From the NCBI RefSeq assembly GCF_002113885.1, contig NW_018480059.1:674295-738294 (forward strand): a DNA stretch of 64,000 nucleotides, in the 5' to 3' direction. The translations under genes and the position numbers were made by a program. The DNA comes from Mizuhopecten yessoensis (Eukaryota). The stretch's first letter is position 1; every line of letters begins with the position of its first letter. Of the stretch, positions 1 through 61,892 are shown one piece after another. The notes under the pieces were generated by a model, which searched no databases, was not told where the DNA came from, and saw only the letters and a list, made by a program, of their open reading frames with translations.

Positions 1-258
1 AATTCTCAAGCTTTAATGTCTATAAAACAACTATTTTATTAAGATAACCTGTCTTCAATTATTATTTAAAGATGGTAACAGCTTATGTGTTTCATACCAC
101 AACCCAATTATACAACCATTCATTTTACGTTCGTATTTGAACAACTTTCGCTCTCTCACATGGACGGTCCTAATAGACAAGTTTGACAACTAAAAGTCAG
201 GTTCGTGTTATCATAAGTATAGATGGATATTGACATTTTACACTTCTATTATCAACAG

Positions 259-3200: not shown

Positions 3201-4018
3201 TTATAAATAAGTAAAGCATTTTTGGTACGTTCAATACTAGCGAAGAATGAGTTTAATGTTCACCAAATGTGACTAGTGTTAGCAAAAGCTTGTTTGAAAA
3301 CAAAGGTTACGAGCCTAAAAGCGTTCTAAATGTTCATACTCCTTTGTTGCCGTAGCTGGAGTACAAGTCAAACAGGGTTCAGCTTAAGTTCCTGCAGAAG
3401 GTCAGCTCCAAAGCCCTCCAGACGATTGTGTACAAGTGTAGGAACACTGTTGCCTACTTTAACCGGGCCGAGGACGCCTACAACAAAGCTATCAAACTTA
3501 TCACCTTTGACGACACCGACCTTGGTGCCCAGGGCAGGAAGAAGTACAGATATAAGGTCGTCAGGGATGGTTGTGACGTACGTATAAACTCGTTGTTCTA
3601 CGGTTTAGTTTTGATAGACATTGTACTTATTGCTGTCGAATGAACCAGTTTAACAATGGAGATACATGGTTTTTTTTCTGGATTTTATATTACAACGTGA
3701 ACTTCAGAAAATGATCTGTATCTTTGATATGTGTTTGATTAAGAGCGTTTTTGAATTTGTACGTTTATGAAAATGGGAAAAAGTTGCATACTGCAGTATC
3801 ATATTTCAATTTAAAAATGGATGAATTAACCAATCTTAAACGGACTTTTTTTGTGGTTACAGATGTCTTCCGACAAGTGGGGAGAGACTGTTCTCGAGGT
3901 TAACACAAAGAAGACAGAGAGGTTGCCAATCATTGATATAGGCATCGCAGATATTGGAAAGGCAAACCAGGAGTTCAAGGTTGAAGTGGGGCCTGTGTGT
4001 TTCACTCACGAAATTTAA
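259..4018 (+). CDS. Fibrillar collagen alpha chain A, 5'-partial (end of main helix, C-telopeptide, COLFI C-propeptide)
   Basis: Nine GT-AG exons in consistent phase: 259-294, 1103-1138, 1335-1409, 1651-1674, 2073-2208, 2532-2638, 3022-3099, 3356-3577, 3863-4018 (TAA). Translation: [34 protein letters not shown]...[14 protein letters not shown] ...ARTCMDL...[10 protein letters not shown]...VYCDF...TCV...QLKFLQ...QTIVYKC...DGC...WGETV...RLPIIDI...VGPVCF. These are diagnostic COLFI motifs. Confidence 0.95.
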
Positions 4019-4665
4019 TTTTATAAATGTATGTAGTTTACAATTGAAAAAACCCGATTTTGGACAATTAATGTGTTTAGATAATCATATATTATTTTGA
4101 AGCATACTGTTATCGCTCAAAATTGTTTTACTTGAAAATGACATACTTGTGAAAACATTTTATACCTTTTTTTCTAAATGAAATGACGCCGCATATAAAA
4201 AATTGCTTTATTGTAGGGATTTATTTTTCTGTACGGGGTGGGACCATTTGTTATCATCATTGGGTTGGTTTATTGAAATATAAAACATGTTGGATGCTTG
4301 TGTGTGTGGGACCATTCCTTTGTTGTTTTCCTTTATCAGAGAAAGATAATATATCACGTGACAGGATGTGTAATGTATCCTGTGTATGAAAGTTGCCATG
4401 GAGGATGACGATACGTGACGTCATCGTTAGGTGTACCACCTGCGGTTTGCCATGATACCGCCCCCGATGACGTCACGTTTCAGACCTTGTATTTTTATCT
4501 GTGATATACAGCTTACACTGCCATGATTTCAAGTACTAAAAGCTATAAACACTATCAGACGTCTGAAAGCTGTAATTTCATTGGTCATTAACATTATCAT
4601 TATTCAAGTTGTCTGACGGTATTTTGTATTATATCATGACACTTGCTTGTCTGACCCTTTTCTTA

Positions 4666-4671
4666 AATAAA
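4666..4671 (+). promoter_or_regulatory. Probable polyadenylation signal of collagen A
   Basis: First AATAAA downstream of the stop at 4018, followed by a T-rich tract near 4702-4720. Confidence 0.55.
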
Positions 4672-5500
4672 AATGAGAAAAAATGACAAAACATGGCGTT
4701 CGTTTTTTTCCTTTTTACTTGATAGCTCCATTAAACATTGATATCGTGCATGACATATCTTATTAATTTTAAAACTAGAAATGCTATTTTAAAATAAAAG
4801 AGGAGTACTGCTTGGATATGGTATTGATTGATTATGTTTTAAGAAAAGTAATAATTTGTCAACACTAAAACGTGTAATGTACTTTTTGGTAAATTTAGAA
4901 TCAACGTTATGAGTAAGCTAACATGTAACGTAGTCAGAATATGTTCCATTCTTGGAACGCTTGAAAAGAAACAACGAAAAAGAAATTAACTATATGGCAT
5001 TTCAAATCAAAACAAGTGTTGTATTATATTTTCTGTTTATTAGTGTGTTTACACGGTAAGGATGACAGGTTTCGATATGCAATTCCATGTATTTCGTCCA
5101 AGTAATACCTGGAATATACACGTTTAGATCCGATACCAGAATATCAAGGAACAGTAACAGTTACAAAAATCAAAGCGTATCGTGAGCCATGCAGCAGAAT
5201 TCAGGAAAACGTCGACATATTTGTTCATTATAAGTGTAGTGTTAATCAATATGACGAATTTAGAAATATTGTGGTGCTTATCCAGTTTAGAAAATCATAG
5301 AGGGCGTGGGGATACACTGTATACAAACAAGAGGCATTATATCGAGGCTTTATATCACCCACAGCGATTATCTAAATGCTTTGCCCTGTGCAAAATATTT
5401 TGAATGATTATCAGTTAATGTAACTGAAATTGTTCAGACTACAAAATATGTCTAGTTATATGTATGTATTAAGACATTACGTTCCTTGACCAATATTCCT

Positions 5501-8500
5501 CTATAGATTTCTGCCTAGCCGGTCTATTTCCTTAACGATAAAGTCCATCCCTGACCTATCACAAAGCGGGTTTTCTATTATGATCCGGAAAAAGTTCACT
5601 AGTCCTTTGCTGGACAAAGGCTGGTAGGCGGTCATCATTGTTCCCTCCATCATCATCTTCGTCTTGATCTGTGGCGCCACCTGATGAATGACAAACATAA
5701 TCGAATTTGTTTTAACCTGATTCGATATGATGGCATGGCAATTGAGTCTAATGGCCAGCAGAAGTTTATCATAGGATTGAAAAGAGCTCTATATTAATAC
5801 GCGTGCATACATTAAAGACATGAAAATGGTATAACATGCATACGCGAATAAAGCATTCAGTTTAACATCAATTAATTGAAACGAGCTTTCATCCTAAAGT
5901 GAGATACACATGTATAACAAACGTACGCTTTTTGTGTAGAAGTCACGGGGAAACCTTTACCTTAGCTACTTCTTTCCACCAATCGGTGTTTTCCTCTTTA
6001 CCCCTAAGTCGTGGTGGGATATACCAAAAACTAATGTTCGTGCACTGAAACTAAAAGAATGGTAAGACATTTAATGGTTGTAAAAAGGTTGTTATAAACT
6101 CTAGAGAACCAAATAATTATTTGTGTTTAATTAATTGCCCATGTGAGATACTGTTTCATCTGTGTTTCTTAATATTAATTCCATCAATTTTGATAAAAAT
6201 CTTAAATCAGTTTCACAGTCGAAAGTTGAAGTACGAGTCAACTGTATTATTATTATATAGATGTGTTATCTCTACTACCTCGGGAAGGACTAGCCGGAAT
6301 CCTTCTGTTTCTTTAACCTTCTGTGTCAGGTACCTAGGTAGGAAATCATTATAAATATATAATAGAATCGTAATTTAAAAAATGTATGAATAAAACGGGA
6401 AAGAAAATTAGCGCGACATCCAAATTGAAATTATTTCTGTAACGAAAATGTTATCCGCAAGCTCGGAGATTGCATTAAAAAAACCAATTTTGGTTATCTA
6501 TGCAAAATTCTAAAAAGCTAAACAAAATATCAAAGGAAACAATAGGCATATACAGCTCATCCGCTATTAAAGGTTGTTGGTAAACTCATTTAGCGTCTGT
6601 ATTATTCAAAAAAGGTAAAGAGCAAATTTATTTAAAACTAATTTAGAACAAGTGCGCTAATAATAACTCCACATTTTATCGATCATTTTTATATGAACAT
6701 TAAGAACTATTCAATTCATGAGACCATCAGAATGAATCAAGGCCGTTAATTTGAACAAACTCGATTGCCTGTTGTCCTAATATATAGTTTGATTATTTAA
6801 CCAGTTGACGTTAAAAGTAGGGTTGTTTAAATAAAAAGTAAAGAAAAGTGACCTTGAAATATATTGGCAGTAAAAATGCTCGGAAATAAAGCAAGGCAAT
6901 TATGTTGACTCTTAATTTATAATTTTGAAGTTTAAAAAAACGGATTTGTTTTGTGTTGATGAGTTTCCATACTTTGCCATTTCGAAAGCATGGTCCACTC
7001 GGGCCTCCATACCCTTGTCTCCATACGCTTTCCACTGCATCCAGAGTTTCAATACGTCCGCCTTTCGTCCACATTGTATTGTCTTGTCACCTTTAATCAT
7101 GCAAATTAACGAATATAAGTTGTTGTCCCTATAATTACATTTCAATTTGTCCTAAGAACTATAGTTTTATGCAAAACGCATCATCTAATATTTCTTTCAA
7201 TAACAATTTCCTTATTGGAATGTTTATGATGCTAGCTGTAAAAGGTGAGAAAAATGGACGGGGTTAAATGACAGCAAAACACGAAATATATCTTCTGTCT
7301 CAACAGTAAATTTGACCGATTTAGAGTTCACCGTTTTTGCCCACTAGAATCATAGAAGATGTAACGAAAATTTAGATAACTGCAGGTTATTTTGTATATA
7401 AATAATCTGTAAAGAAAGCATGGATTATTCAACATAAGTAGTTAAATATATTATGCCTCATACCAGTGTATTTACACCTTCTTTTTAAAGTAACCGGTCA
7501 CTTATTTTTCAAATAAATTGAAGGTTTGCAGGTCATTTTAGTATATTCTCGTGTGGTAATTTACGCTGATACTTTTACGTATAACGAGAGTTGTCATATT
7601 TTGGGGACTTCCTTACCTTGTGTTTATCAAAGATTTGGTTTAACTGAAGACATAATGAAATATAATAATTAGGAACAGAGGGCAGTCTATGGACTAGAGT
7701 GGAAATTCATCTGAATAGTCTTTGTTCTGGTCCATTTGACCTTCTGTTGAGGATTGACTAGTCAAGTTACATGCAATATGTGGTATGCATACACTGACCG
7801 TCAATTAATACAGACCAATTCGACATATCGAAGTCGTATACACCATGTTTTTGTTTAGATAAAAATGATGGTACCCATATTACATTTAAACACAACAAGA
7901 TCAGCTGTAATGCAACAAAAGATTATGCAGTATTTTCCAACGGACATAGATATTTTATACATCAAACGCTCGTTTTGGGCATATTAGAAAGATTTCACAT
8001 TACAAAATCTAAGACGAGATGGAAGCATTTTTGTCTTCATTATTATTCGTGATAACTACATATATATTAATTCCACTACATTTCTTAAAAATTAATTACT
8101 CATATCATATTTTAATGTTGACACATTTCATTAAATTCGCGTAGCCGAATTTCATGAAAAGGGCGAATAAGATGATCTACTACGATAAATACAATTTTGC
8201 AATTGCACAATTTATTATAATTTTCTTAGAGTTAAAGACTAACTTGTAACTTGTGGAAACCGGGGTCTCTTTTTAAAAAGAATATGGTATAGATTTATGT
8301 AATCTACTTGATAGTATGTTTAATAAAATTCACATTGTAAAAACAGGTCCTTACTGTCCAGATAAAGATTACCTTAATTTTATTTTATTTTTCTATTTTG
8401 CAGCGTTACTTAAATCAAGGTATCATATTCTCACTGCCAGTTATATTACAAAGAAGATTTTAACCGGTTCCTAGTTTAGATAAGGTCTTGCACATAAGAA

Positions 8501-11500
8501 ATGTGGAGTTTCTGTGAAATGACCTATGTTATATCTTCAATAAGATTCATCAGTTTGGAAATATGTAATATCAAAGTTTTACTTTCAACACAATCAATGT
8601 ACGAGTTAAACGTGTCGCAACGTTTCTAGACCAACTGATCCCTTTGTTAAGAAGCAATCAAAATCAGGGAAACTCCAAACATGAACAGACGCGAAGGGAG
8701 ACACTAGCTGATTCAACTGTATGACCCTATATTGACATAACGGGAGGGGGCTAAATCTACACCCTACCTGTGACGTATTCGATGCAATGTGTATACGCTC
8801 TCTATCGATAGGCGAAACTGCCCGGGTCGAGTGACATAAAAAAACATGATATCGTCACATCGTTGTACAGGTAAAAAAAATACAAATCGACACTCAGTCA
8901 TAGATTGAAAAAAAGGGACCAGTCTGTCATGAAACGTTGCGACACGCTTAATATGGACATTATTTGTGTTGAATGTGAACCTTCGATAAGACCTATGTAA
9001 TATGTTACCAATATCGTAGGAGGTGTCGTAGCATTTGTCTGGTTGAAACAGATACTCTGCATGGAACGAGTTGCATTGTTCCAAGAGTCCCTTCAATAGA
9101 AAACAGAATATTATGATTTAGTACAAGACCTATCTCGTTGCAGAGCATTGTTTAATTACAAAATTGAAAACAATGCACCCATCTTCCGAATTATTCATAT
9201 CATAATTGACAATACTTTTTAGCTTTTAAATAGACGTTAGCATTTTTAATACAATTATCAAGTTTAAAAGCAACCAAATATTCACAAGAAAGTGAGTGAG
9301 CACGTGTCGCTTCTTACTTGAAACTGTTAGTCATTTACTTTTCGCGTACGCTTACTTTTGCAAGTATTCATTAGCATTTGTTTCGTGACTTGAGGAATAC
9401 TAGAAGGAATCATGTACATATACAAAAAATCGTGAAATATTCACAATTGACTTTATTCAGGAATATTCACTATATTCACTTAGATATAATTCGCGTAACA
9501 TGAGTTATTAACAGTATCCTTCAACCATGATGGTATGAAATCCTGTGCTTGTAACATAATGTATAAGTCTGTTACAATTTGCTTTTAGTAAAATTCAAAT
9601 GTTCTGATACACTATGCTTGGTGTAATATTGCACTGTTCACATACACCATGCTTGTTTAAAAATAAGTTGCCTGATACACTATACTTGATATTAAATCAT
9701 ATTGGTATGATAAGTATAATTGGTGTAATACCATGCTTCTATTATACACTGAATTAGGTGTAAATCTAAAGCGGTATGTTATTCTATTCCTATTATGAAA
9801 CTATAGTGGTTTGATGTATTCTGCTTGGTTCACTATCATTCTGGGACATTATGATTGGTGTAAAATTGTAGTCATCTGATAATTATACTTGACTATTTTT
9901 TTTATTCCTATGAGATACTACGTTTGGTGCTAATTCACAGTTGTCTGATATCGATACCGTATGGTTAGTGTAATGTCATAGTGGATTGATACAGACGTAT
10001 ATGTGTTTCATTGGACGAATTAAACGACTACCTTCTCTTTCATGAGCAGAGTTGAACACTGGATAGGTACACCACTCATCTTATGCTGGTTCCACGCCAC
10101 CGAGTCTGCTCTGATGTATTAAAGAAGTAAATGCAGACAGAATAATTATAAGCACAAAATTAAACGTGTGGGAAGTTAAACACATATACGATAGGTACAA
10201 AGAAACAAGATATCAGAGACAGTGTAAGTGTTTGTATACTGATGTTGGAAGTTACAAATAGAATGAAAGAATTTAAAAATTAAAAGATTTTTGAAAAACT
10301 AATCTGCATAACAAATATATAGGTCATTATGAATAACTTATGATATACAACGGATTTCCAATAAATGATTAATTCGTATAATTGTTATATATTCATTGTC
10401 CTTTCTATAAAAAAAACAAAATAAATGACAAACTTAATTTTAATAAAATCGTGAATTTATTGTACAGATTATTTTTTGAGAATATGTTAATAAATTGAGA
10501 TGTAATATTGAATGTTGTTAACAATTTAATATCATAAATGTAATATATCAACCGATAACATTATCTATATTTGAATTCTTGAGTGTTGAGTGTTACCTTT
10601 CAACTCCACTCATGAGTGAATGGTGTTTTGCTGATAAGATTGCACTTCCTCCCCAGGCCGCCTGTATGTATAAGGAGATATATCAAAATGAAATTTTGTT
10701 AGTAGTGGTTGTACATGTAACGTCAAGTTAAATGGAATGGGGCCGTACACTATCGTTCATCGTCCCAAACATTAGTTATTTGATATACAGATGATGTGAT
10801 TTTTTTATCACTTTAATATTAAGTCATTATCTCATAACAAACTATTGAAATGAGATATTTGGCACTAACATGTCTAACATTGAAGCAAAACTTATTCTTC
10901 CGTGCAGTATAGTTAAACTAAATTAAATTACAGTAACCTCATTAATACAATACAGTGATCACAATCTAGTATCTAAAACGTACGTCGACGTGCATCCAGA
11001 CGGAGTGCTTCTGACAAACATCGGCTATAGCATTGAGGTCGTCATAGGAACCAAGAACAGTCGAACCACAGGTGGCCATCACAAACACCGGCTGTGTTCC
11101 CTTTAAACATTATCAAAACACTACATAAATGATTACCTAGTATATATAAGAGACATAGGATGAGGTGGTTCTGATTTTTCTTTACAATTCTTCAAACTCG
11201 ACACTCATTTCAGGTTCCTGTGTGTTAAAGTTTCATTCACAAAGATAAATAACCACTCGAGGTGAATTAGTTGATTTATTAATAGGCTGACGAAGGAAAT
11301 TTTAATATATATCTAACTGCCATTGTTTCACTTATTGAAAACACAAACTGACACTTTTGCCAAGACAGCTTAAATGTTTAGCCAAAATACATTTTATTGT
11401 TATTTTTACCTACGTATGTTTCGTGACATTGCTTACCTTCGTTTTCTGTTCTGTGAGTTTTTTGTCAAGATCAGTTGGACACATCCGTCCGATATCGTCC

Positions 11501-14500
11501 GTATTGACCCTGATTAGGTTGTCCATTCCTAATCCCAAAAAACTGGACCCTTTGGCTAGAGAGTAGTGTGCCTTAAACAGTTTACATAAAACACTTGGTA
11601 ATTAAAAGGACGAAAGAAAATGAAATTTCACAGAATGATATTAGTTACAACATATTGATAGTATGACGTCGGGACATGGAAAAGAATCACCGTTGTTGTG
11701 TTTGTCGCTATGACAACCTGCTGTTGGAACATTTTCTATGAAATCCTCATTATCCAGTTACTATGGCTGTCTCATTTACGCAATGTGACGATGTTATTTC
11801 ACGGTATACTCGTTTCTGTGATAAATAATTCTTAGTCTCAGTGACATGTTAGCTTTATAAGACATTTTACAAAGGCAGTAAAATCCAGCATAAACTAATG
11901 AACATTAAAATATTAGTTTATTTTATTTTATCCTTTATTAAGATCAAAACACTCATTTAATGCGTTAAATATTTGGATAAACGATTAATATTTTGAATGA
12001 TCATTTATCTTATGCTTATAAGTGTATTTTATAACACGTATATTAATTATACCTACATCTGAATGAGTAAACATCGTCATGACCTTCGACCCGAAATTAC
12101 CCGTCTGTTTGAGTGACGGATTGGTCTGGTACCTCGCAACATGTAGTGCTAGGATATTGGAATAGGAACCACCTGGGAAAGATATCAACATACAAAATAA
12201 GATATCATAATTCAAAATCAAAATTAAATTAAATTAATATCAATATTCAAAGGCGTCAACATCAGAACTCAGATATAAAATTGCAACATAAACCGCTACA
12301 GCAATCTACAATGAAATCAGATGTTCCAGAAGAATAAGTGTTTCAATCACATATGTTACTCGTCATTCACAGAGATTACCGTATGTCACCATGATCAATG
12401 TTACTTTCATCCGAAATCGATATGCTTCTAAATTCTGAGTGCTTACTTATAGCATAGATTGTAATTATAGAGTGTGCTTTAGAATATGCTATCTTCAACA
12501 ATGACAAATTCATTTCTTTACCTGGACAAAAAACACCGTCACCATTTGGAAATCCAAACACTGAACACATTTTTTTCATCATGTACTTCTCCAAGATCAC
12601 GAAAACAGGGGCTACTTCGTAAGTGTGTCTGCAAGAGTGAACACTTTTTAGTAGAAACAACACTTATTGTAGAAAAAACCCGAAACATATTTAAGATTAG
12701 CTTTCAAACGACAAAACATCCTACACTGGCATATTTCATACTTAATTTTGCTTATTATGCTAATTAGATTATTGTTTCCATTGATAGATTCATTACCACA
12801 GATTTCATATTTTGCCTGGAATTCTTCTTGTTGTATCTTACCTGGATCAATGCAATAACACGATTGTTCCAGTTAGCATGATTGCTAAGATAATAGTCAT
12901 GTGTTTCACTGTTTGCAAAACAATTCAAAAGCCTATCAAACATCAGGACGAGGTCTTCTAAGGATGGAATTTCCGATGTAACAAGGATAATTATAAATTC
13001 ATAAATTCAAATAGTGAATGTGTCGTGCAACTGTACACATAAACATTAAACAAACAATGCGACGGATTTTGTCAACCTACACTCAGGAAAATCTTACGCT
13101 TATGCTTAATTTCCCGTAAAGTTTGTCAATGAATCAGGGCCGGAGAGGTGTTCGGACACACGAGGTTTTATTTTTGCACAAGCGTTTGGCATGACGTCAT
13201 GTGGTGATACATTACGAGTCGACTCACAGATTAGTGCTAAGGGCGTCAGTGAGCCACGCCCCCGCCATGCTGTATGGATCTTTGCCGCTGTAAAGCTGAT
13301 TATAGAATCGAGGATGACCTGACAATATACAAAATAATATCTTACAGTACATATGATGTCATTATTTATCGATGATATAGGACAACTACGTAGCTTATTT
13401 TTTGGATCATTGTAATTAAGTGAACAAAAAAGATAATTTAAGCTTTAGGCAAATTTGACACTTATAATATTATGTTTGTTATTACTTTTTTTTGTGTCTA
13501 GGTCATGCTAAATATTTTACATATATATCAAACTAGAGACATGTTATCATCTAGGTGTGAAATAACACTTGTTATTTAATTCGTGTTGTATTTTTGGTAC
13601 TTTGCACTTTACAAATGCAGAATCCAATAAACAAAATGTTCTGACAAAGTCATATAAAATATATTCTTCGTAAGTGTAATATGTTTAACAACCTTACGAA
13701 ATCATTTTTTATAATCTAACTTCCCAAACTCAAAAATATCACCTTAAAAACACATATTTACTACATATGCATTATAGCTCATGGTTATTAATGCCTTAAA
13801 TTTAAAATGATTATAGCAATAGCCGAGTGTTAGTGAGTATATTCGTTTACATGCATATGCATTTAACTTATGCTTTACTGCAAAGGGAATGAAACACACT
13901 AAGAAAACAACAGTCGTTAACATACACTGTACCAACGCTGACACTAGTTCAGAGTATATATGAAGTGACACATGAAACTAATCTATAATATAAAGAATTC
14001 ACAATTTAATGTTAATGCTGATTTCAGATAGAGTCCGAATTCTCTATGTTTCAAGCAAACAAAAATTGCAATCTGTACATTGGTGTTCTGACTATAATTC
14101 GATTGATTAAAGAAAATAAAAAGCAGGACCTGTATACATAAGAGAAGAACCAATTATTGACCGTACCTGTTTTAACGCTGTACTTTATCAGGTCACTACT
14201 CAGCTCCAGTAACCGTTCGTTTGAAGTAGGTCCGTCTTGAATGTTAAGGTCGAGTAATTTCTGTTACAAAAATAGTTGGTTAGTAAAAGCTACATTGTAC
14301 CTCAACAACATTCCCAAATGATAACATATATCGCTAATGATCATTGGTAATGGAATAGCTTTAGCTTGTGTTCTATAAATTGAGAATAAACTAAGGATAT
14401 TGTATGTACATTTAAAGCAGAATCAACCATTTATCATAAGAACCCTTTACAACGTGAACTCTTTGAACTCCTGAAATGTTTTGAATCATAATATAACTTA

Positions 14501-15237
14501 ATGAAGGAACGAATATGATGAAAAAATCTGTTTTGCACACTGTGCTTAAATTCATAATTAAGGTATAATTGTGTTGGTTTTTTTTATTGTGCGTAGTGAT
14601 ATGTTTCATAATAATAATATACAATAATATGCAACATTTGATATAGCGCCCTGTCTAGTTAGAATAAGCCACTCTAAAGCGCTTTATGTTCCATCAGACT
14701 GTGGTTATAAAAATATAGCCCGTTCGAATTTCATTTGAATATATGCAAATTAAGTGAATGCCGCAAGGTACAAAAGAAACCAGATTGTTAAATATCTTAT
14801 ATTGAAAGAAATTTCATAAGTAATAAGATTGGAGTATGGCCTCACCTCCAGCTCCTGTGGTTGTACAAAGTTACAGACTTTGCTGTTGACATTTTCCTCC
14901 GCCTCTATTGCCTCACTGCTCATTAGTTTATAAAATTTATCCAAGAACTCTTTCATGGAAGGGTCAGTGAAGGGTTTATCTACAAAAACAAGGAATATAC
15001 AATGAATATAAAATTTGTACAGAGCCCCTAATCTGACATGCTATTCACTTATTTTATTTTGTGTGATGGAAATATTATTTCGATTTAACGAGTTATGGTT
15101 TCGTTTTATCGAAAGAGAAATTAGTTATAAAGAAATAATATTTAGAAAAATATCAATAATAACTGTGATCTCTGTAAAAATTAAATGAGACGGACTGGTT
15201 ATGTACTTGGAGCTAGATACTCACTTATATATGCCAT
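5501..15237 (-). CDS. CSAD/GADL1-like: PLP-dependent acidic amino acid decarboxylase (cysteine sulfinic acid decarboxylase / GADL1 / aspartate decarboxylase-like), 491 aa
   Basis: 15 coding exons (transcript order): 15237-15225, 14979-14846, 14260-14167, 13318-13228, 12628-12522, 12172-12057, 11571-11437, 11100-10984, 10661-10597, 10110-10032, 9090-9009, 7090-6973, 6333-6279, 6050-5961, 5680-5501. Total 1476 nt, all GT-AG, open frame. Family motifs: [64 protein letters not shown] (PLP Lys301), [27 protein letters not shown]. The short N-terminus fits CSAD/GADL1 rather than GAD1/2. Confidence 0.93.
8569..8988. mobile_element. Degenerate MITE-like element with ~77-bp imperfect terminal inverted repeats
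   Basis: 8569-8645 (tatcaaagttttactttcaacacaa...cgtgtcgcaacgtttc...gatccctt) is the approximate reverse complement of 8912-8988. Both ends are TA. Lies in a decarboxylase intron, 20 bp from a donor site. Confidence 0.6.
9600..9990. repeat. Highly degenerate ~35-bp minisatellite
   Basis: Recurring ctgatacactatgcttggtgtaat-like units. Confidence 0.55.
14608..14690 (-). mobile_element. Isolated L2-type LINE/SINE 3' tail remnant
   Basis: ataataata...atatagcgccc...actctaaagcgcttta matches the stem-loop and tail of the L2 fragment at 42572-42647. Confidence 0.5.
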
Positions 15238-15312
15238 TGTTCGCTGGTTCTTAGTAACAGAATTAGCTATTACGTGACGATCGGTTAGCCTGAGCAGCCG
15301 AGGTGGTAGTTG

Positions 15313-15598
15313 CCTGATAATATGTCGGAACATGAAATTCGTTGACAGCCTGTAACATATGATCGTGTCCATGCATAGTAAATTGTTAAATAATCTATTG
15401 AGTAGCAAAGTTCGGAACGCTAGAGTCAAAAGGTGAATGAAGCATGATTCGGTGTCCTGATAATATATTGGAACATGAAATTCGTTGACAGCCTGTAACA
15501 TATGATCGTGTCCATGCATAGTAAATTGTTAAATAATCTATGGAGTAGCAAAGGCCGGAACGCTAGAGTCAAAAGGTGAATGAAGCATGATTCGGTGA
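15313..15598. repeat. Near-perfect 143-bp tandem duplication just upstream of the decarboxylase start codon
   Basis: Copies start at 15313 and 15456 (cctgataatat...gcatgattcggtg) with only a few substitutions. Confidence 0.9.
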
Positions 15599-15731
15599 CC
15601 TTTCTGGGATCAATATCCCAAATAACATTGATAAATAACAGTAAGTCTATCTAACAAGGAAAACAAATGTGTGTTTAGCCAAAGGCTAATCTCCGCACGG
15701 TCCTAATAAAATATGGACCATGTGGCCAACT

Positions 15732-16201
15732 ATGTTAGAATACACTGTCGTAACGTGCTAGAATACACTGTCTTAGCGTGCTAGACTACATTGTCTTAAC
15801 GTGCTAAAATAATTGTCTTAACGTGCTAGAATATATTGTCTTAACGTGTTAGAATACATTGACTTAGCGTACTAGAATGCCTTATTTTAGCGTGCTTGAA
15901 TACATTGTCTTAGCGTGCTAGATTGTCTTAACGTTCTAAAATAATTGTCTTAACGTGCTAGAATATATTGTCTTCACGTGTTAGAATACATTGTCTCAGC
16001 GTGCTAGAATACATTATTTTAGCGTGCTTGAATACATTGTTTTAGCGTGCTAGATTGTCTTAACGTGCTAAAATAATTGTCTTAACGTGCTAGGATATAT
16101 TGTCTTAACGTGCTGGAAAACATTGTCTTAACGTGCTAGAATACATTGGCTAAACGTGCTATAATACATTGTCTTCACGTGTTAGAATACATTGTCTTAA
16201 C
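15732..16201. repeat. ~23-bp minisatellite (gtgctagaatacattgtcttaac) with a 132-bp higher-order period
   Basis: About 20 monomers. The variant monomer gt(g/t)ctaaaataattgtc recurs at 15801, 15933 and 16065. Confidence 0.9.
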
Positions 16202-17326
16202 ATTGCTCATTATCAGTTGATTTTAAATGCTTACCCAGCGATGAATAAAGATAGTCGTATGTATCATTGGACTACACTACTATGTTTACACATGATATCG
16301 GCAACACGTTTGTTTAACCTCAGACCTTGTCACCTTGACACGACATCCCTGTTCTGACCTTGACTAGTCTACCCTGACGTATTTGTCAAATATCACGCTA
16401 TACAGACGTTGGCGTGAGAAATTCATAACGACTTCAGGTATATAATCTGTCGCAGCGTCATATATTATTTCCTTTTACATGCTAATTTTTCTAAAATTGA
16501 ATAATATAAATTAGGTAACCATTTTCTTATAGCTGTGCTGTCGTGTTCACCGAGTGAAATAATACACAACAGACTGTTAGTGCATAACAGTCTTTGCCGG
16601 CGTGGCATATTATGATAAAGGACCTATAGCGTTGTAAAATCAAATCAGCAAAGCTAAATGTGTTCATCACGGTTTTCTAGATCTTCGAGCTTATATTAAA
16701 ATAAACCGATACAAAATTATTCATATATGTAACTTAATATGTCCCGTTGTAAGGGACTTACTTACGTACGCACAGATCGTCGGCAAGTCGGCGATAGTCT
16801 GCTGTTTATGCTCTGTATTTAGGTCAGTGAGTATGGAAGACTGTTAGTATCACATATCTCTAAGGAATATCACGGAGACAGGAATAGCCACATCAACTCA
16901 AATGATGACGCTCAGCGATATGACGATCAATATTCTATGTACAGTAAAATCTCGTTATACTGTCGTTATATCCCCAAGAAATTTTGACGTTATAAGGGAA
17001 TTCGGCGATAAATTGAGGACATCGTATATGTATGATTGACAAATGAAAAAGGCATTATATCGAGGTTACTCAGTACTCAGTTACCAAGCACATGGTGGAG
17101 AATCCAAATTGGACATAATGTGAAGTTAAATAACTTTAAGTGTGGTTTTGAACCCGGCACTTACCGGTTGAGTCGTATTTTTATTTCATTAACGTGTGTC
17201 GGATGTCAGGCAGATGTTTACCACGTTTTGTTTCTTGAATGACTTTCTGACCCGTGTTGCATGTATCGTACTAATGTTAATGTGATGACTGGAGTGACTT
17301 ATTTGTAAATTGATCAACTCACCACT

Positions 17327-17975
17327 ATGATTCCGGATAAAGTGTTGCACATTTTAAAAACGTACGATTTGGACGTCGCTAATTTAGACTGTTATTTTGT
17401 TTTGATTGAGAACACGGACAGTGTTTCCCTTACATTAAAATGGACAAAAGTAAGCATGCCATATTTTAAAGCAAACGTCAATACTTCAAAAGCGAGTGAC
17501 AGTGTGCAGGCACCTTTTGTTCAAGCTATCGGGAAGCACAGGTCGCCGTCCCAACTCCAGTATGACAGGAAATGAAGGAGGGAGTGGAAGCAGATGAAAA
17601 TGTCTTCCCATGAAGAAGTAACAGATGTCTCTTGATCATTTATCACATCCTCGAGGATCTACTGGTGAGTCGCCCATACAACATGAAGATAACCATTTTT
17701 ATACTACTGTGAATGTGGAACCAGTTTGTGAGAAACTTGATGCAAAACCAAAGGTTCAACATCAACAGCACACTACTTTTAACCCAGTGCTATATAATGC
17801 TATTGTTAATCATGTATCGTCTCATTCTGTGCCGTCTCCGGGACCACGTTTTGTAGCTGTTAGGTCAGTGCCGACATCAGTCCCTGAAGCATGTGTTTCT
17901 ATCGACAGCAAGGACATGCTAGCATTTTTAATAGGAAAAAGAAATGATCTTCCTCAGAATCTTGTGTATAAGTAG
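17327..17975 (+). pseudogene. Eroded intronless ORF, probably transposon-derived
   Basis: MIPDKVLHIL...KHRSPSQLQYDRK*RREWKQ continues through one stop. A second ORF (17625-17975) follows in a shifted frame. Coding-like composition, but no family can be assigned. Confidence 0.3.
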
Positions 17976-18856
17976 ACATTATCATTCATTGCACACTTTT
18001 ATTAGCATAATGATATGTGAATCCTACATCATGACATTATAGATAATGGTTATTTATTTTTGATGGACTTCGTTCCCCAATGAAGCATATAGTTACCTAG
18101 ATCAACCATTAGCATTTCATTATATCAGGCTTTTTTTGGCTCAAACAGAACTTTACCACATCCCATTACTACATTGTTGTGTTACTAGTATTGTGAAATT
18201 AACTGTCAGTGCTGCACGTTTGCTAATTTTTTATAACTATTCAATCATCTTGATTTCAATGATTGGTTTTTTGGTACACATGTGTAACTGTTACAAGTAG
18301 TTGTCACTGTGTACACGAAACTGTATGTAAATTGTACAATCAGTTTATGTTTTGCCTATTTCAAATTAGAAAAAAATGATCCCAGGATAGAACTAGAATA
18401 TGTTATAAAGAAATATCATTCTGTAAATTCAATTGATGGTTGTGAAAGAAAAAATAACGGGTCTATTTTTGTTTTGCTGGGGGGATGTTATATACTTGGT
18501 ATATATCATATTTTCTCTCATTTCCCTGTTGTAAGATAGATCTGTCCAGGGTTAGAAAGGAGTGTAGGAAATTACTATTTTGCACTCCATTTCACGTGAC
18601 GTGACGAATTCGGAACTCTCCGATGCCGCAATGCGAAAGGCGACGTCATGAAATTAAAACCTTTTATAATATATTTACCGTACATGTTAGAAAGATGTGA
18701 TTGAATGTTCTGCTCCAAACACTGTTTGCTCATATGGGATAATTCGCTTTTGTCTAAACAGCTCAGGGAAAAATGATATTTTCAAAAATGGGGGCCAGTC
18801 CAAACGCATTTTCATGGTTTCTGAGCTTATTCTGGAGATTGGAATTAGAGAAAAAT

Positions 18857-19007
18857 ACTCTTTCGTGCCCAAGGGGGTAGGACAAGGAAATTCCACCCTC
18901 GGGATTTTCAAATTTGGCAAAACCCGAGGCGAAGCCTCGGTTTTTACCAAATTTGAAAATCCCTCGGTTGCAATTTCCTTATCCTACATCCCTGGTGATG
19001 AAAGAGT
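18857..19007. repeat. ~150-bp imperfect palindrome centred on cgaggc-gaa-gcctcg, probably the core of a non-autonomous DNA element
   Basis: Arms gtaggacaaggaaattccaccctcgggattttcaaatttggcaaaacccgaggc and gcctcggtttttaccaaatttgaaaatccctcggttgcaatttccttatcctac, with the loop at 18931-18933. Confidence 0.7.
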
Positions 19008-22000
19008 CTTATGATGCCTTTTAATAGAATATCCGGAATTGACCGTTTTGTGAATTATGGTATTCCGTCTCCGTAAATTATGTCTATGTTTTGCTGTGGA
19101 CTTCCTGTTTCCGGAAATAAAATGAAAAGTTGAAGAGTGAAGCTGTTTCGATTCATTTCTTAATAATCCTCTTATATCGAAAACCTAGTACAAAGGATAT
19201 TATATCAATTGTTTAACCTAGATGAAATCAGACGGCATCAACAATGCAGAAGAGCAGAGTTTTTGTTTAGTTATCACACAACAGTTTACATACGTAACTT
19301 TCAAAATTACTGACCATGAGTACTTATTTATATTTAAATATTTTGATGATTTTTGACCTCTTTGATATTTGTAAATGGAGAGAGAAAATCATAAAATAGG
19401 AAAAAGTCGTCTAATTTGAATGCCAAAGGCTTTGTTTAATGTATTTTATTTAATAATGTCACTTTGATCTTAGATTTGAGAAGGTCTGTGTGTATTTTGT
19501 GTTTAAAATTTTTTATAAAAGGTTTTATTCTGATACATATCAGGTGTAACATGTAAATACAATGCAATTAAAAGGACTAATAATATTAAATATATAATGC
19601 AGAGGCTATTTTGAGAATGGGTTAAAGCAAACAATGACCAAGAAATTGTGGATTGATTGGAACAAATGGAAAAGCATATGTGTGTTTATGTATTTGCGAT
19701 GTTGAAAGAAATTAAACATCATCATTTAATCCATATGGACTTTTAATAAAATAAGTAAAGACGTTTTCAAACAGGTAAATTTCGCTTTCAAACATAACCC
19801 TGGCAGTTATTTTTCCCCTTTTGTTCAGTCTATAAATAAATCACGCACAACCTATGGCAGAATGAGACCTGTACATATGACATTTATGAAAAATCTGTCA
19901 GTTTCTTCTTGAGAATGGCGAAACCAAGCTTAAACTTTCCAATCAAAGATGGTTTTGGATGAATATAATAATTTTTGGTTTCCATTGTATAAGAATATAA
20001 AAATATGTCTTTTAAAGCTTGAAATATTTAGTTCGGTATACAAATATGGCTTACCTTACCGAAATAGCCTTCAAAATTATTTTTTATTTTATTTTTTTAT
20101 ATTAATATTCATATCAACGAAAAGCAAACAAATATAGCATGGGCTTCATCTTGCAGGGAAATCATATCAGGTGGGGCGAGAATTGTAATGTATTTAAGAT
20201 GTATATGTAAAACACACTTAACAAATCAGTAATCAATCTCGGTATGTAGATTTGATCGAAGGCAAATATCAAGCGATATCAGAAGAGTATCTTTGCCCAA
20301 TCTTTCAGCTTGATATGTGATACATTAACGGGTGAGATATATGTAGGACTATAATCTGTCGAAGTGCTATACATACATACGGGACACGTCTTAAAGCTTC
20401 GTTAATGTTTCGAGGCCATTTTTTCACACATCAATCTCCAACTTGGTTTCGAGGTGTTTTATTGCCAAAAAGGATCACATATTCTGATTTCGCTTAATTT
20501 CATGGTCATTTTCAATATGAAGACGCCTCGATATCTGTAGAAGTCTATGTACACAAGTGACACGCCGTGGATCATAAAAAGAAGTTATAATTACTCATTT
20601 TGTTCCCTTTTAGGTATCTGAATATTTGTATATACTTATTCCTAGTCATGAAACTAGCAAATCTATTAATGTTGAAGGCTGATTTAGTATTGAAAAGGAA
20701 GTATCTGACTATGCTTCATTAAAAGTGCAGATCCATACAAACATGTGACACGACGTTTGTCGTAAATATTGAATATCATATGATACGTGTAAATGAGTTC
20801 GCCTGAAGCAGCCAAAGAAGGCAGAGACGCCTAGCGGTCAGTCGTGTTTTTTTTTGTTTTGTTTTTATTTTGTTCTTATCATTTTTTATATATATATTTA
20901 AAGAAACTTTTGTCATTTTATTTTTCAATTGAGGAGAAACTTAGAAACTCTTGTCGGTTTTTTTTTTTTTTTATACCAGGGAGTTACTAAGAACCTTGTT
21001 ATAACATTTGTTTTTATATATATACATATGTGATAATTAAGATTAAATATCCATGTGGAGTAGTTTTTTTTCATCTTTACTGTTCTCTTTATATATCAAA
21101 GTGAAACTAAGTGAACATGTGTAGTATAGTTTTATCAATAATATACCTTGTGATGTCGCTTACTTTAGTTAGTATTTTCAAAGATATAAACAGATCATCA
21201 GGTTCAGCAGGCCACAGCTCGTGGGAATGGACAAAGAACATGATTTCTTCTTAATACACCTTTTGCTATCGATCTCCATTTTTTATGGTGTCAATGTTGT
21301 TTATAGTAACACGATCAAACATAAAGTGAATATTCCATCTCCAGCATTTCCAACCTTTTTTCCCGATTAGAAATGTAAATGAGGCTCAGCAGATACCCTT
21401 TATGTTGCAAGGAGATTCCAGAAACGCTTTTCATGAAATGAAAATTGAATGTTCGAATGTCTCACGAAGAGGAAATAACTTCTAATACCTTAGTTATACA
21501 TCAAAGTTCGATTTCAGACAGGTTTTGTAACTATATTAATACGTAAAGTACATGTTTACAAGCATCATGTAGAAAAAAGGATAACAAACAGTATCTCCAT
21601 ATTCTGAATGTGTATACAATAAGAAATTTGGAAATAAATAAGAAAGAAGTAATAATTCCGCGCTTAATTTGAAATTAATGCTTGGGAGACGATATTCCGC
21701 CCACAATACTAAGGTAGTGCTGCTCGGGTATTTGAAGCGATTTCATTCTCATTAGTGACAAGAAATATTTCAGAATCGATTGATACTGGTTTCCACACAC
21801 AATTGAGTTTGTCTTTTTATTTTGCAGTAACAATGTCTTTTTTTACACCTTTCGCACTAGAAAACGTAATGGGAAAATGTACGTAAGAAAGCTAACCGAT
21901 GGTAAGTACTGATAGAGAGAATATAGTAAAAGGCACAAACCTTAACAAGATAAGCCTTTAGACCGATATCAGGGTATTCGATATAACCAAGTCGACCTAC

Positions 22001-23347
22001 ATAAACACGAACTGCCAGGCGATTTGATATAAACTTCGAGTGAACGTGGTGTTCCTACTCACGATAACCTATTATAAAATCATAGCTGCTTTTCTTCTAC
22101 ATCTTTATTCAGTTGATATCTTGATCTCATGTGATTTTATTCATGATCGCCTCACGATCAACACGAACAGTTCTAAATCTAAAAGCATACTGAAAGCGGT
22201 ATATATATGGTAACCATGTTGACTAGGGTTTTGCTCGAATAACACGGTAACCAAGTTTCAAACGAATTAACAAGAACCTAATTAAAACCTCAGTTGACAT
22301 TCCTGTTAGTACTCACAAATTGTATTGTAAAAGTTGCACTTTACTCCACATTATCTCTATGTCAAATCGAGTCTCGACATAAAACAAATAAGATGAAATA
22401 TAGGAGTCAAACCCTCCCTTTTACCTCAGTTGAAACGGCTTAACTTACCTTATCAATGTTTATTTCATTCCCGTTATCGACCTTTTTAAGCAGTCATCTT
22501 CATTTTTCTTGATACTATCTTTAAAGGCAGGAAACTGCCTAACGATAGACGGCAATTTAATTGTATTTCCATACGTCTCGGCATATAATATTGGTCAGTT
22601 ATATGCCATTACCTTCAGTAAAAAAATGTCTACTTCACAAGATAAAAAGTAGGATTCTCTGTGACTAGAAGTGCTGAGCAGTACATGCTCACGCTACTTT
22701 ACGTTCCTTTATAAATGGTGCAACTTTTGTAATGAAAACTATTAAAATACAATAATAGTTCTTCTGTGGCCTCAAAATCAATTCAAATAAACATTTCCGT
22801 TATTTTTTAGAATAAAAAGTCGCCAAAGTGATGTTTTAAATCTTAATTCCATTCTGAATGTAGGCGTTAATGTCTTAGATTTCAAGTGATAATTCCGGAC
22901 GCTGATGAGTTCACTGCCAAGACCATCCGGTATCCCGTTTTGTTGTAGTTCGATGTATTAGAACATCTAGGATTGGGTAATCAAAGAAATGCAAATTTTG
23001 AAACGAATGGTGAATCGTGTACACTTAAATCAATACCAGGATTTAGATTTGGTAAAATATATCAACATCGATATATCCTTCCTTATTTTGTAAATCACAT
23101 ATAAAATGCAGCAGGGTATATATGCTGTTTTCATGCAAGACATTTCGCAAGGACAGTCTCGTATAAAATGGTACATTGGTATGATAACGTTCTGTGTATA
23201 TCTCCCGGATACATTTTAATTCAGCTGTTAAGTAGGTTGACCCCAAAAACAGGAAACATGTACAGATTATATGTGATTCACTTTAATATGTAAAGGATTT
23301 TTGCAGCTATGAACATAATAACACCAACACATATCAACTTAATAAAA

Positions 23348-23353
23348 TTTATT
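23348..23353 (-). promoter_or_regulatory. Probable distal polyadenylation signal of collagen B (proximal alternative at 23922-23927)
   Basis: AATAAA on the minus strand about 830 nt after the stop codon. Confidence 0.4.
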
Positions 23354-24185
23354 TTGTTCCCCGTTAGCTACTGTTTAGTGTTTGAAATGACGTCGCATAA
23401 AAAAATTGATGATAATGATGAAAATATGAGAGGTAGAAAAATATAGTATGTGAGTTTTGACCCTAATTAGAATTTAAATAATGACACTTTCATAGAGTGC
23501 CAATATTACACCAACACAGTAGTAATATATTGTTAACACCTCCTGAGGCAAGAAGTGTTTTATCCCTTTACATATACATGTATTTGTATAATTCCCTGTT
23601 TATAAATCTAAACAGGAATCACATTGTATTCCCCTATAAATATGCATAGACAGGAAGGAAAGACGATGAAACAGTGATAGTTACATATGGACGGATGTGA
23701 TAAGGTTATCTCCCTTTATCAGAAAAAGAGAACATATAACATGGTTTATCAAATTGCTATGGTTGCCCTTATTATATTCCAATTTGCCATGAATTTGAAT
23801 TTTCGTAAATATGTCAAATGATATTAACCGACTATGTGTTCTCTTGTTCTTAAATGAATAAGTATCACCAATTCAGCACGTATTCACTCATTTGCTCATA
23901 TTTACACACATTTGCTCATATTTTATTTCTTCCGAAGAAAAAATGGTCCCGTATTATTTCACTTTTGTTACCCATTGTTCTTCAATGGAGATGTTAAGTA
24001 GGTATCGCCATGATTTACCATAGTGTTTCGAGACTCAGTATTATGTATCACACCATCTATCTGGAGATGGTCTATATTCGATTTGTATACCAAATGTGTA
24101 GATTCTGCCACGATTTCAAGTACCAAACGTCTGCCATGATTTCAAGCAAAAGTTTAAAAGAATGAAATTTGATTTATCAATTTAA

Positions 24186-61507: not shown

Positions 61508-61892
61508 NNNNNNNNNNNNNNNNNNNNNNNNNNNNNNNNNNNNNNNNNNNNNNNNNNNNNNNNNNNNNNNNNNNNNNNNNNNNNNNNNNNNNNNNNNNNN
61601 NNNNNNNNNNNNNNNNNNNNNNNNNNNNNNNNNNNNNNNNNNNNNNNNNNNNNNNNNNNNNNNNNNNNNNNNNNNNNNNNNNNNNNNNNNNNNNNNNNNN
61701 NNNNNNNNNNNNNNNNNNNNNNNNNNNNNNNNNNNNNNNNNNNNNNNNNNNNNNNNNNNNNNNNNNNNNNNNNNNNNNNNNNNNNNNNNNNNNNNNNNNN
61801 NNNNNNNNNNNNNNNNNNNNNNNNNNNNNNNNNNNNNNNNNNNNNNNNNNNNNNNNNNNNNNNNNNNNNNNNNNNNNNNNNNNNNNNNNNNN
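61508..61892. other. Assembly gap (385 N)
   Basis: Run of N flanked by a G-rich tract on the left and a minisatellite on the right. Confidence 0.99.

Follow-up and report, generated by a model that had tools for sequence, protein, structure and literature searches.

Conserved blocks with mutual mRNA complementarity in the 3′ untranslated regions of two convergently oriented fibrillar collagen genes of Mizuhopecten yessoensis

The 3′ untranslated regions (UTRs) of two convergently transcribed fibrillar collagen genes of Mizuhopecten yessoensis, hereafter called A and B, have in common short blocks of 16–27 nt that are antisense to each other in the two mRNAs. These blocks exist far beyond chance, are unique in the genome and are part of the mature mRNA of gene B. 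Cross-species sequence comparisons show saturation at neutral sites, yet both genes retain conserved islands with sharp borders, and the blocks fall on these islands. We tentatively favour the reading that the blocks are the remnant of a single 3′ segment formerly transcribed from either strand and that they may have been kept because the two mRNAs pair, with a probability that we place somewhat below even.

The window analysed here is a 64-kb stretch of DNA, and all positions refer to it. Gene A, on the + strand, ends with a last coding exon at 3863-4018 (exon 3863-4015, stop codon 4016-4018), and gene B, on the − strand, with one at 24186-24341 (exon 24341-24189, stop codon 24188-24186). Both match the terminal part of the Pfam COLFI domain (PF01410), with E-values of 6e-18 for A and 4e-9 for B, exons having been searched against the profiles one by one rather than as a joined spliced model. 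Gene A has 37 G-X-Y runs on the + strand upstream of the window, totalling at least 1020 residues, and gene B has 38 such runs on the − strand at 27116-44890. Further COLFI exons were seen as well. A and B thus have the features of fibrillar collagens, namely an NC1 (COLFI) domain at the C-terminus and an extended, uninterrupted G-X-Y helix. The two genes are convergent, as proposed in the initial annotation, but they are not immediate tail-to-tail neighbours: a gene for a PLP-dependent decarboxylase lies between them on the − strand, outside the elements described below (approximately 5501-15519, with PF00282 matches at 6912-7145 and 12376-12663 and a C-terminal open reading frame at 5501-5698). 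The A UTR appears to end at about 4690 and that of B begins at 24185, and the genes therefore do not overlap at one locus as cis-NAT partners do.

The starting point was a 23-mer of the A UTR (block 4, 4518-4540, + strand, with a 16-nt core at 4518-4533), located 500 nt past the A stop codon. Direct sequence matching located its two reported counterparts on the same strand, in tandem, 38-81 nt past the B stop codon and separated by a gap of 3 nt. The distal copy (block 4a′, 24105-24127) has two mismatches, both T>C. The proximal copy (block 4b′, 24131-24148) contains the exact 16-nt core at 24131-24146 and matches at 17/18 positions when extended, with a third T>C difference. As these are same-strand matches to oppositely transcribed genes, the sites are indeed antisense between the A and B mRNAs, block 4a′ in the B mRNA (− strand) being the complement of the A 23-mer with two G-U pairs. 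Computed in isolation, the predicted duplexes have energies of -34.7 kcal/mol for 4a′ and -27.9 kcal/mol for 4b′, and the predicted accessibility of the sites is unremarkable (84th percentile for the A element, 27th-30th for the B copies). The short GCCATG(A) words listed in the initial annotation are present at 4395, 4449, 23786 and 24007, and of the six GCCATGA copies that the window has on its + strand, five fall inside the two UTRs. The UTR comparison also identified an extra short motif copy in B (GCCATGATTT on the + strand; 24007-24016, − strand), which has a T>C counterpart at locus L013.

The complementarity between the two UTRs proved larger than initially claimed, with two more significant blocks and a 10-mer. 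Block 1 of A (4179-4205, + strand, 27 nt, core 4178-4194) is 93% identical to the same-strand sequence at 23383-23408, which constitutes block 1′ of B and is its antisense in the mRNA (− strand). Block 2 (4330-4354, + strand, 25 nt) is 88% identical to the same-strand sequence of block 2′ (23713-23737, − strand in B). Block 3, which contains the GCCATGA word (4446-4455, + strand), matches block 3′ (23783-23792, − strand in B) at 10/10 positions. All shared blocks are collinear and lie in the same orientation on the chromosome; as the two genes are transcribed in opposite directions, the blocks are reverse-complementary between the A and B mRNAs. They are ordered 1-2-3-4 from the A stop codon and 4-3-2-1 from the B stop codon, with the B poly(A) signal 29 nt beyond block 1′ and the B stop codon 37 nt beyond block 4b′. 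This order and these distances to stop codons and poly(A) signals are as expected from one segment read from both ends, and they resemble those of convergent overlapping cis-NAT pairs, although today a distance of 19.5 kb and another gene separate the copies, and nothing overlaps. All three differences in block 4 are T>C changes giving G-U wobbles, as described initially, and across all blocks 5 of 7 differences between A and B are G-U compatible (P 0.002-0.03). As the T/C variation falls on a CpG/TpG site, however, a biased mutation process might produce the same pattern as tolerance of wobble pairs. Every motif copy has Y at the variable position.

Comparison of the A and B UTRs yielded four same-strand HSPs of 31.5-35.3 bits. 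No opposite-strand HSP rose above background, and same-sense similarity of paralogous UTRs was rejected on this basis. HSPs of at least 30 bits were found in none of 68 control tiles and in 1 of 500 shuffles; the two UTRs thus show the complementarity beyond chance between distinct loci that characterizes trans-NATs. No match to the 23-mer with up to three mismatches was obtained in 100 shuffles. The exact 16-mer also exceeds chance, as had been argued, with a composition-aware expectation of 7e-4 for one shared by the two stretches, instead of the original figure of about 1e-4. A genome-wide count, suggested at the outset as a check, revealed 3 exact copies of this 16-mer in 988 Mb, for 0.38 expected, and hence it is not a repeat. 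The third copy, on another contig (L001), is devoid of flanking similarity and of collagen context and was taken as a chance occurrence. The block-1 17-mer is found exactly once in the genome, and in a whole-genome BLAST each UTR matched itself only. A SINE-like repeat or transposable-element origin, which calls for multiple copies in the genome, was discarded.

It might be argued that AT-rich UTRs have many short words in common, that lone exact 16-mers arise by chance when the search space is large and that a comparison of 9 kb with 14 kb gave seven HSPs of 31.5 bits. However, the comparison of 0.7 kb with 0.9 kb made here contains three independent collinear blocks, for about 0.03 expected. 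Their uniqueness in the genome, the controls, and their recurrence in RNA contigs and in contigs of other species effectively refute an explanation by chance, by a piece of a transposable element or by faulty assembly, to which we assign a negligible probability.

The B 3′ UTR (23351-24185, − strand) is present in a 1499-nt RNA contig that covers 23351-24341 and is spliced (24341^24636), which places the B sites in mature mRNA, one of the checks proposed in the initial annotation. A lower-depth RNA contig extends this UTR below 23100. Among transcriptome-sized contig sets, those of 20 runs, drawn from 15 studies, contain 90% or more of the words sampled from the B stretch, and a word search with the B last exon found nothing further. 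The A 3′ UTR probably spans 4019-4690 (+ strand), as its first canonical poly(A) signal is AATAAA at 4666-4671, with no AATAAA or ATTAAA between the A stop codon and 4666. Sequence conservation up to this signal suggests that the A mRNA reaches 4518. Spurious open reading frames inside the A UTR, looked up for RNA contigs, gave no matches.

Orthologues of A and of B were each obtained from one other species, possibly a different one for the two genes. Alignment of A with its orthologue (L011) gave identities of 48% in the intron, 78% in the exon and 51% in the proximal UTR, and 26 of 51 third codon positions of the last exon differ. Identity reaches 87% over 4285-4690, which places the distal 3′ UTR above the coding exon in conservation; beyond the poly(A) signal, identity is down to 41%. 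Around the A element, some 44 nt (4494-4537, + strand) are invariant, with 43 of 43 aligned columns identical between the window and L011. Block 2 is conserved in L011, and the block-1 core is kept at 16/16 positions amid otherwise unalignable sequence. The base after this core is A in both genes of M. yessoensis and G in both orthologues, whose species may differ; it is thus a candidate for a paired change that preserves complementarity between the genes. The A UTR also harbours a predicted hairpin on the + strand, with arms at 4413-4426 and 4465-4478 and block 3 in its loop; its 14-bp stem is present in both species, maintained by one compensatory change from U-A to C-G. Most of 4285-4690 is conserved sequence private to A, without a B counterpart. 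The conserved stretch, about 44 nt around the element and 400 nt overall, is far wider than its complementary part, which suggests that the A UTR has other functions as well.

The B UTR is alignable with that of organism C only as islands, one of which corresponds exactly to 24104-24151 (44/48). In organism C both tandem cores are intact, 4b′ is identical, and the 4a′ copy is a perfect 19/19 complement of the A element. Block 2′ lies within an island at 23611-23747 that is 93% identical, and the core of block 1′ recurs as a loose contig end. Conserved parts private to B, without A counterparts, are found at 23611-23712 and 23825-23926. The alignment of orthologous UTRs called for in the initial annotation thus indicates that the arrangement of one site in A and two in B is kept in each gene's two sampled species. 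None of the blocks was found in 1.8 kb of 3′ flank of the third fibrillar collagen gene of the genome (C5494), nor are they present at more distant A-like collagen loci (L015-L020), which indicates either that they are not deeply conserved or that these loci are not orthologous. Several hits with the look of vertebrate collagen C-termini, conceivably human, were left out of these comparisons.

The explanation that we tentatively prefer is as follows. An ancestral segment between the two stop codons would have been read from both strands, as overlapping convergent 3′ UTRs. This segment would then have been duplicated in direct orientation, with decarboxylase-bearing DNA now separating the copies. 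Selection would keep the A and B mRNAs able to base-pair in trans, which might serve to bring the mRNAs together for the assembly of heterotrimers or let each of them influence the stability or translation of the other. Points against this explanation are the unremarkable predicted accessibility, the possible mutational bias at the CpG/TpG site, the CRE/ATF-like character of block 1 and of the hairpin arms, the width of the conserved A stretch and the lack of the blocks in a more distant A-like collagen. It had been reasoned initially that shared ancestry would generate same-sense similarity. This argument needs qualification, since direct-orientation ancestry of a segment read from both strands explains the antisense relationship; the antisense nature of the sites, their non-repeat status, the presence of the B sites in mature mRNA and the 1:2 copy numbers all stood. 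There is a precedent in published trans sense/antisense pairs whose link to cis pairs runs through paralogues (PMC2528163).

A common segment might also be a mere historical relic, each block being kept for a separate function on each strand by mRNAs that do not interact. The private conserved parts of each UTR, which have no counterpart in the other, speak for such a history, but the same few short blocks, out of some 700 nt, would then have to be functional on either strand purely by coincidence. Furthermore, the best B island (24104-24151) and the best A stretch (4494-4537) are mutually complementary, and the block is duplicated in B. We consider this scenario improbable.

The main rival to mRNA pairing is a shared DNA regulatory module, i.e., a 3′ enhancer that once served both genes and was duplicated, with RNA complementarity as a by-product and with orientation of no consequence for function. 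A DNA-level motif (RFX/YY1-like) had already been named as an alternative in the initial annotation. The blocks may be viewed as putative transcription factor sites: CRE/ATF-like sequences, spotted by eye, are found in block 1 (a 7/8 CRE-like word) and in the hairpin arms, in addition to the GCCAYGATTT-type motif. The A UTR has two perfect TGACGTCA palindromes within a CpG-rich patch. The short motif, present in 2-5 copies per UTR with Y at the variable position of every copy, is reminiscent of a homotypic site cluster; the sharp edges of the conserved islands give them the appearance of footprints; and partner collagen chains are expected to be co-regulated. However, perfect identity over 19 nt between paralogous loci and over about 44 nt between species exceeds the size of usual binding sites. 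That conservation of A ends with the poly(A) signal argues for a role in the transcript, and the compensatory change in the hairpin is of the kind that RNA would show. The motif pair is not enriched in the genome (130 occurrences versus 100 for the reversed control, most matches being satellites), and the motif is missing from the 3′ flank of the third collagen gene. YY1 requires a CCAT core, and this core is broken in the T>C copies. A DNA module is thus a serious possibility, albeit an unlikely one.

Small RNAs would offer another route, if one UTR gave rise to a 19-23-nt miRNA, siRNA or piRNA targeting the complementary sites of the other mRNA. The element does have the length of a small RNA, and the near-perfect tandem sites resemble cleavage targets. 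Conversely, no pre-miRNA could be recognized around the element: the 4485-4625 segment folds no better than shuffled sequences (minimum free energy -17.5 kcal/mol, z +1.08), with the element in a predicted loop instead of a hairpin stem, and no Rfam family was matched in the window. We judge this route very unlikely.

A special case of mRNA pairing, put forward in the initial annotation, is that one B mRNA tethers two A mRNAs at the endoplasmic reticulum and thereby biases co-translational assembly towards an A2B heterotrimer. The combination of one A site with two tandem B sites in each gene's two sampled species, the full-length fibrillar nature of both collagens and the stability of the predicted duplexes in isolation are consistent with it. 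Nevertheless, the B sites are only 3 nt apart, leaving little room for two bound mRNAs. The additional collinear blocks 1, 2 and 3 speak more for UTRs aligned antiparallel in a 1:1 contact, and a zipper of this kind would explain them no less well than a tether of 2:1 stoichiometry. The tether model is doubtful in our view, and we hold with equally little confidence that conserved 3′ UTR pairing, with each tandem B site capturing one A mRNA, might set A2B stoichiometry before the C-propeptides meet.

The synthesis of vertebrate type I collagen mRNAs' products is coordinated at the mRNA level by LARP6 and a 5′ stem-loop, a same-sense 5′ structure bound by the protein. To our knowledge, this LARP6-bound stem-loop is the only RNA-level answer to partner-chain coordination described so far. 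The present elements would address the same problem, partner-chain synthesis through an RNA element common to both mRNAs, but they are located in the 3′ UTRs and are antisense to each other.

Other described systems share some of these features. Like trans-NATs (Li et al. 2008, PMC2528163), the blocks are complementary stretches from different loci; their collinear arrangement resembles the multi-HSP classes of that study, in which an origin from cis pairs has a precedent. They differ in being short islands of 16-27 nt rather than long duplexes, in being under cross-species purifying selection and in that both partners are mRNAs that encode proteins, which are likely to be partner chains of a single structural protein. 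Staufen-binding sites can arise from intermolecular mRNA-mRNA duplexes (Gong, Tang and Maquat 2013, as presented in PMC6426291). In that account, too, the 3′ UTRs of two mRNAs pair, with a regulatory outcome for both, but the duplexes are formed by SINE (Alu) repeats, imperfectly and over about 100 nt or more, whereas the elements described here are single-copy, short and nearly perfect. Finally, the kissing-loop dimerization of oskar and bicoid (PMC11567897) is a short, sequence-specific RNA-RNA contact between 3′ UTRs that joins mRNAs in one particle, and a short motif copy of A likewise sits in a conserved hairpin loop. Those contacts are homotypic and involve short palindromic loops, unlike the putative heterotypic contact of 16-23 nt between two genes proposed here. 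Our literature search for collagen mRNA-mRNA complementarity found no report.

It has long been asked how cells manage to produce partner collagen chains at the correct site and in the correct proportions. If the blocks act by pairing, they would represent a rare conserved heterotypic contact between subunit mRNAs and a clear example of a cis-antisense pair that has become a trans pair. Should the A2B reading be true, it would reveal an RNA-guided route to heteromeric protein assembly derived from once-overlapping convergent genes. If they act as DNA, two collagen genes of an invertebrate would have a compact enhancer in common. In either case, the blocks provide short and precise experimental targets.

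The two convergent fibrillar collagen genes are separated by a PLP-dependent decarboxylase gene (Pfam PF00282; ~5501 to ~15519, - strand). The last exon of collagen A (+ strand) spans 3863-4015 (COLFI, E 6e-18) and is followed by a stop codon at 4016-4018, the helix exons (37 G-X-Y runs, at least 1020 residues in total) being located upstream of the window. For collagen B, coded by the - strand, G-X-Y exons were found in 27116-44890, the last exon at 24341-24189 (COLFI, E 4e-9) and the stop codon at 24188-24186. Profile and homology searches used exons one at a time, without a joined gene model, and the genome searched was a 988-Mb assembly of 82,659 contigs. By eye, the decarboxylase resembles glutamate or cysteine-sulfinate decarboxylases. 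Its likely poly(A) signal (5036-5041, - strand) lies ~325 nt from the A poly(A) site, and TTTATT words at 4207-4274 raise the prospect that a long decarboxylase isoform could overlap the A UTR. A run of 385 N at 61508-61892 represents a gap or masked sequence.

The 23-mer at 4518-4540, 500 nt beyond the A stop, has a same-strand copy with two T>C differences at 24105-24127, and its 16-nt core, CTGCCATGATTTCAAG, is found again without change at 24131-24146. We thus reproduced the sequences and positions of the sites proposed in the initial annotation, those of B being 38-81 nt beyond its stop. Sensitive BLAST of the A 3' region against that of B yielded four same-strand HSPs of 31.5-35.3 bits: block 1 (4179-4205 with 23383-23408; 27 nt, 93%), block 2 (4330-4354 with 23713-23737; 25 nt, 88%) and block 4 with its two B copies, 4a' (4518-4540 with 24105-24127) and 4b' (4518-4533 with 24131-24146). 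Block 3 is a 10/10 match between 4446-4455 and 23783-23792. The blocks are collinear, in the order 1-2-3-4 from the A stop and 4-3-2-1 from the B stop, and opposite-strand matches between the two regions did not rise above background. HSPs of at least 30 bits were found in none of 68 equally long window tiles and in 1 of 500 shuffles. Three independent blocks were observed for ~0.03 expected in UTR-by-UTR space, an expectation scaled from a ~200-fold larger comparison with seven such HSPs by chance. Five of the six GCCATGA words on the + strand of the window are inside the two UTRs. The genome contains three exact copies of the 16-nt core where composition predicts 0.38, and the one outside the two UTRs lacks flanking similarity. 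Whole-genome BLAST with either UTR returned that UTR alone; the element is therefore not a high-copy repeat. Chance, repeats and artefacts were excluded as sources of the match. From these comparisons we infer that the two UTRs are homologous along their length in direct genomic orientation, which makes the A and B mRNAs antisense to each other, as initially proposed. A 13/16 match to the core is present at 31518-31533 (- strand), in the sense orientation of the B pre-mRNA and apparently intronic; chance alone would give the window ~0.5 matches of this quality.

Both B sites are within the B mRNA. A 1499-nt contig spans 23351-24341 and is spliced to 24636, and the stretch that it skips ends in CT..AC, i.e. 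GT..AG on the - strand. At least 90% of the words sampled from 23330-24185 were recovered in 20 runs belonging to 15 studies; the contig sets of these runs, of 27-707 million letters and mostly below 100 million, are too small for genomic coverage of this assembly, indicating that the words come from mRNA. An ATTAAA at 24181-24186 (- strand) overlaps the B stop and is evidently read through and used inefficiently, since RNA contigs extend >800 nt further. In one run (X1), a lower-depth 1024-nt contig, located at 23100-23727 and below, continues beyond the AATAAA at 23353-23348 to ~22700, which suggests a longer B 3'UTR isoform or read-through. Short contigs of 60 nt with alternative sequence, covering 23698-23788, suggest a polymorphic site. 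The A 3'UTR probably extends past 4518 to the AATAAA at 4666, with good indirect support: no AATAAA or ATTAAA precedes that signal after the stop, and cross-species conservation reaches it, then collapses.

A word search with the A last exon identified a 51-residue orthologue (82% identity), carried by two DNA contigs of another species (L011, L012). Identity is 48% in the intron, 78% in the last exon, with changes at 26 of its 51 third codon positions, 51% over the first 150 nt of the UTR and 41% beyond the poly(A) signal, which places neutral sites near saturation. The 4285-4690 segment is 87% identical, so that the distal UTR is more conserved than the coding exon, and 4494-4537, containing the element, is invariant (43/43, a run of ~44 nt). 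The block-1 core (16/16) stands alone as a conserved island, at the position of the block shared between A and B. The arms of a 14-bp inverted repeat lie at 4413-4426 and 4465-4478; both contain a perfect TGACGTCA palindrome, and the loop between them carries a GCCATGA copy. In the other species, a T>C in one arm is matched by an A>G in its partner (U-A to C-G), so that the arms remain fully complementary. On this covariation, 4413-4478 is read as a conserved hairpin of the A 3'UTR; it could equally be an inverted pair of CRE sites.

For B, a whole-library search with the last exon, from which several vertebrate-looking matches were left out, gave a spliced C-terminal fragment (P0002, 69% identical); its RNA contig, L013, includes 215 nt of 3'UTR. 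L013 was assigned to organism C because it exactly matches loose ends of that organism's contigs. In its positions 1-3050, the gene caller reports seven + strand ORFs instead of a single one, which may reflect frameshifts or splitting of the collagen repeat by the caller. Organism C matches the B UTR in islands at 23422-23443, 23611-23747 (93%), 23825-23926 and 24104-24151, the letters between them being unalignable. The last (44/48) is exactly the tandem pair: both cores are intact, three of the four differences fall in the spacer, and copy a is a perfect 19-nt complement of the A element. One A site for two B sites is the count in both species sampled for each gene, although the A and B orthologues possibly come from different species. 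A third short motif copy (24007-24016) is kept with a T>C, and a loose contig end of organism C contains the block-1 core. The base following that core (4195/23399) is A in both window genes and G in L011 and organism C, which may be a coordinated change if these two orthologues share a species. The B UTR of organism C also holds AAGTTGCCATGG, which matches A 4390-4401 exactly and makes up one half of an RFX X-box-like palindrome; in the window, the B counterpart (23752-23763) has decayed at two positions. This is further evidence for a common origin of the two UTRs and for a loss of blocks that proceeds separately in each lineage.

None of the blocks was found in the 1.8-kb 3' flank of the only other COLFI gene detected in the genome (C5494; L014, 261807-265362), one COLFI exon match of which contains three stop codons, perhaps from an intron read through or damage, nor in a more distant A-like collagen (L015-L020). 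Genome-wide, 10-mer pairs within 200 nt were no commoner than in the reversed control, and most were satellites. No Rfam family was found in the window.

We tentatively propose that A-B mRNA pairing is functional. The isolated duplexes are predicted to be stable (-34.7 kcal/mol for 4a, -27.9 for 4b, -27.4 for block 1 and -27.1 for block 2). Five of the seven A/B substitutions across the blocks yield G-U pairs (P 0.002-0.03 by assumed rate; four of six without the two-base 4b extension of the initial annotation). Pairing is also favoured by conserved stretches longer than ordinary factor sites, of 19 nt when the paralogous loci are compared and ~44 nt between species, by conservation in A bounded by the transcript and by the RNA-type constraint of the nearby hairpin. 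It is weakened by unremarkable accessibility predictions, by the T/C position being a CpG/TpG site, at which mutational bias may mimic wobble tolerance, and by a conserved region in A far wider than its complementary part. The resemblance of block 1 and the hairpin arms to CRE/ATF DNA sites also counts against pairing and fits a shared DNA regulatory module, a reading that is somewhat unlikely in our view. As most of 4285-4690 has no counterpart in B, additional roles specific to A must exist for its distal UTR. That the blocks are a relic under independent constraints is rather unlikely. As a special case of pairing, the tethering of two A mRNAs by one B mRNA towards an A2B trimer is improbable. 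A small-RNA route is more improbable still: the element has no hairpin of its own, lying in a predicted loop that an invariant 8-bp stem closes, and the folding of 4485-4625 does not surpass that of shuffled sequences (z +1.08).

The closest systems are trans-NATs (PMC2528163), SINE-based mRNA-mRNA duplexes in Staufen-mediated decay (PMC6426291) and 3'UTR kissing contacts such as oskar (PMC11567897), but none has single-copy conserved heterotypic blocks joining partner structural-chain mRNAs, and we found no paper on such blocks for collagens. Precedents exist for trans antisense pairs that are linked to cis pairs via paralogues (PMC2528163). The A/B gene duplication appears old, as the last exons are only distantly alike by eye, and sensitive BLAST found no same-sense UTR similarity left. 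The direct-orientation, collinear blocks fit a single ancestral segment between two stop codons that would have served as both 3'UTRs and later been duplicated in direct orientation, the decarboxylase-bearing DNA now separating the copies. The B poly(A) signal is 29 nt beyond block 1' and the A stop 160 nt before block 1; the B stop is 37 nt beyond block 4b' and the A AATAAA 125 nt beyond block 4. Since neutral sequence is saturated even between the two species, selection must be maintaining whatever similarity is left between A and B.
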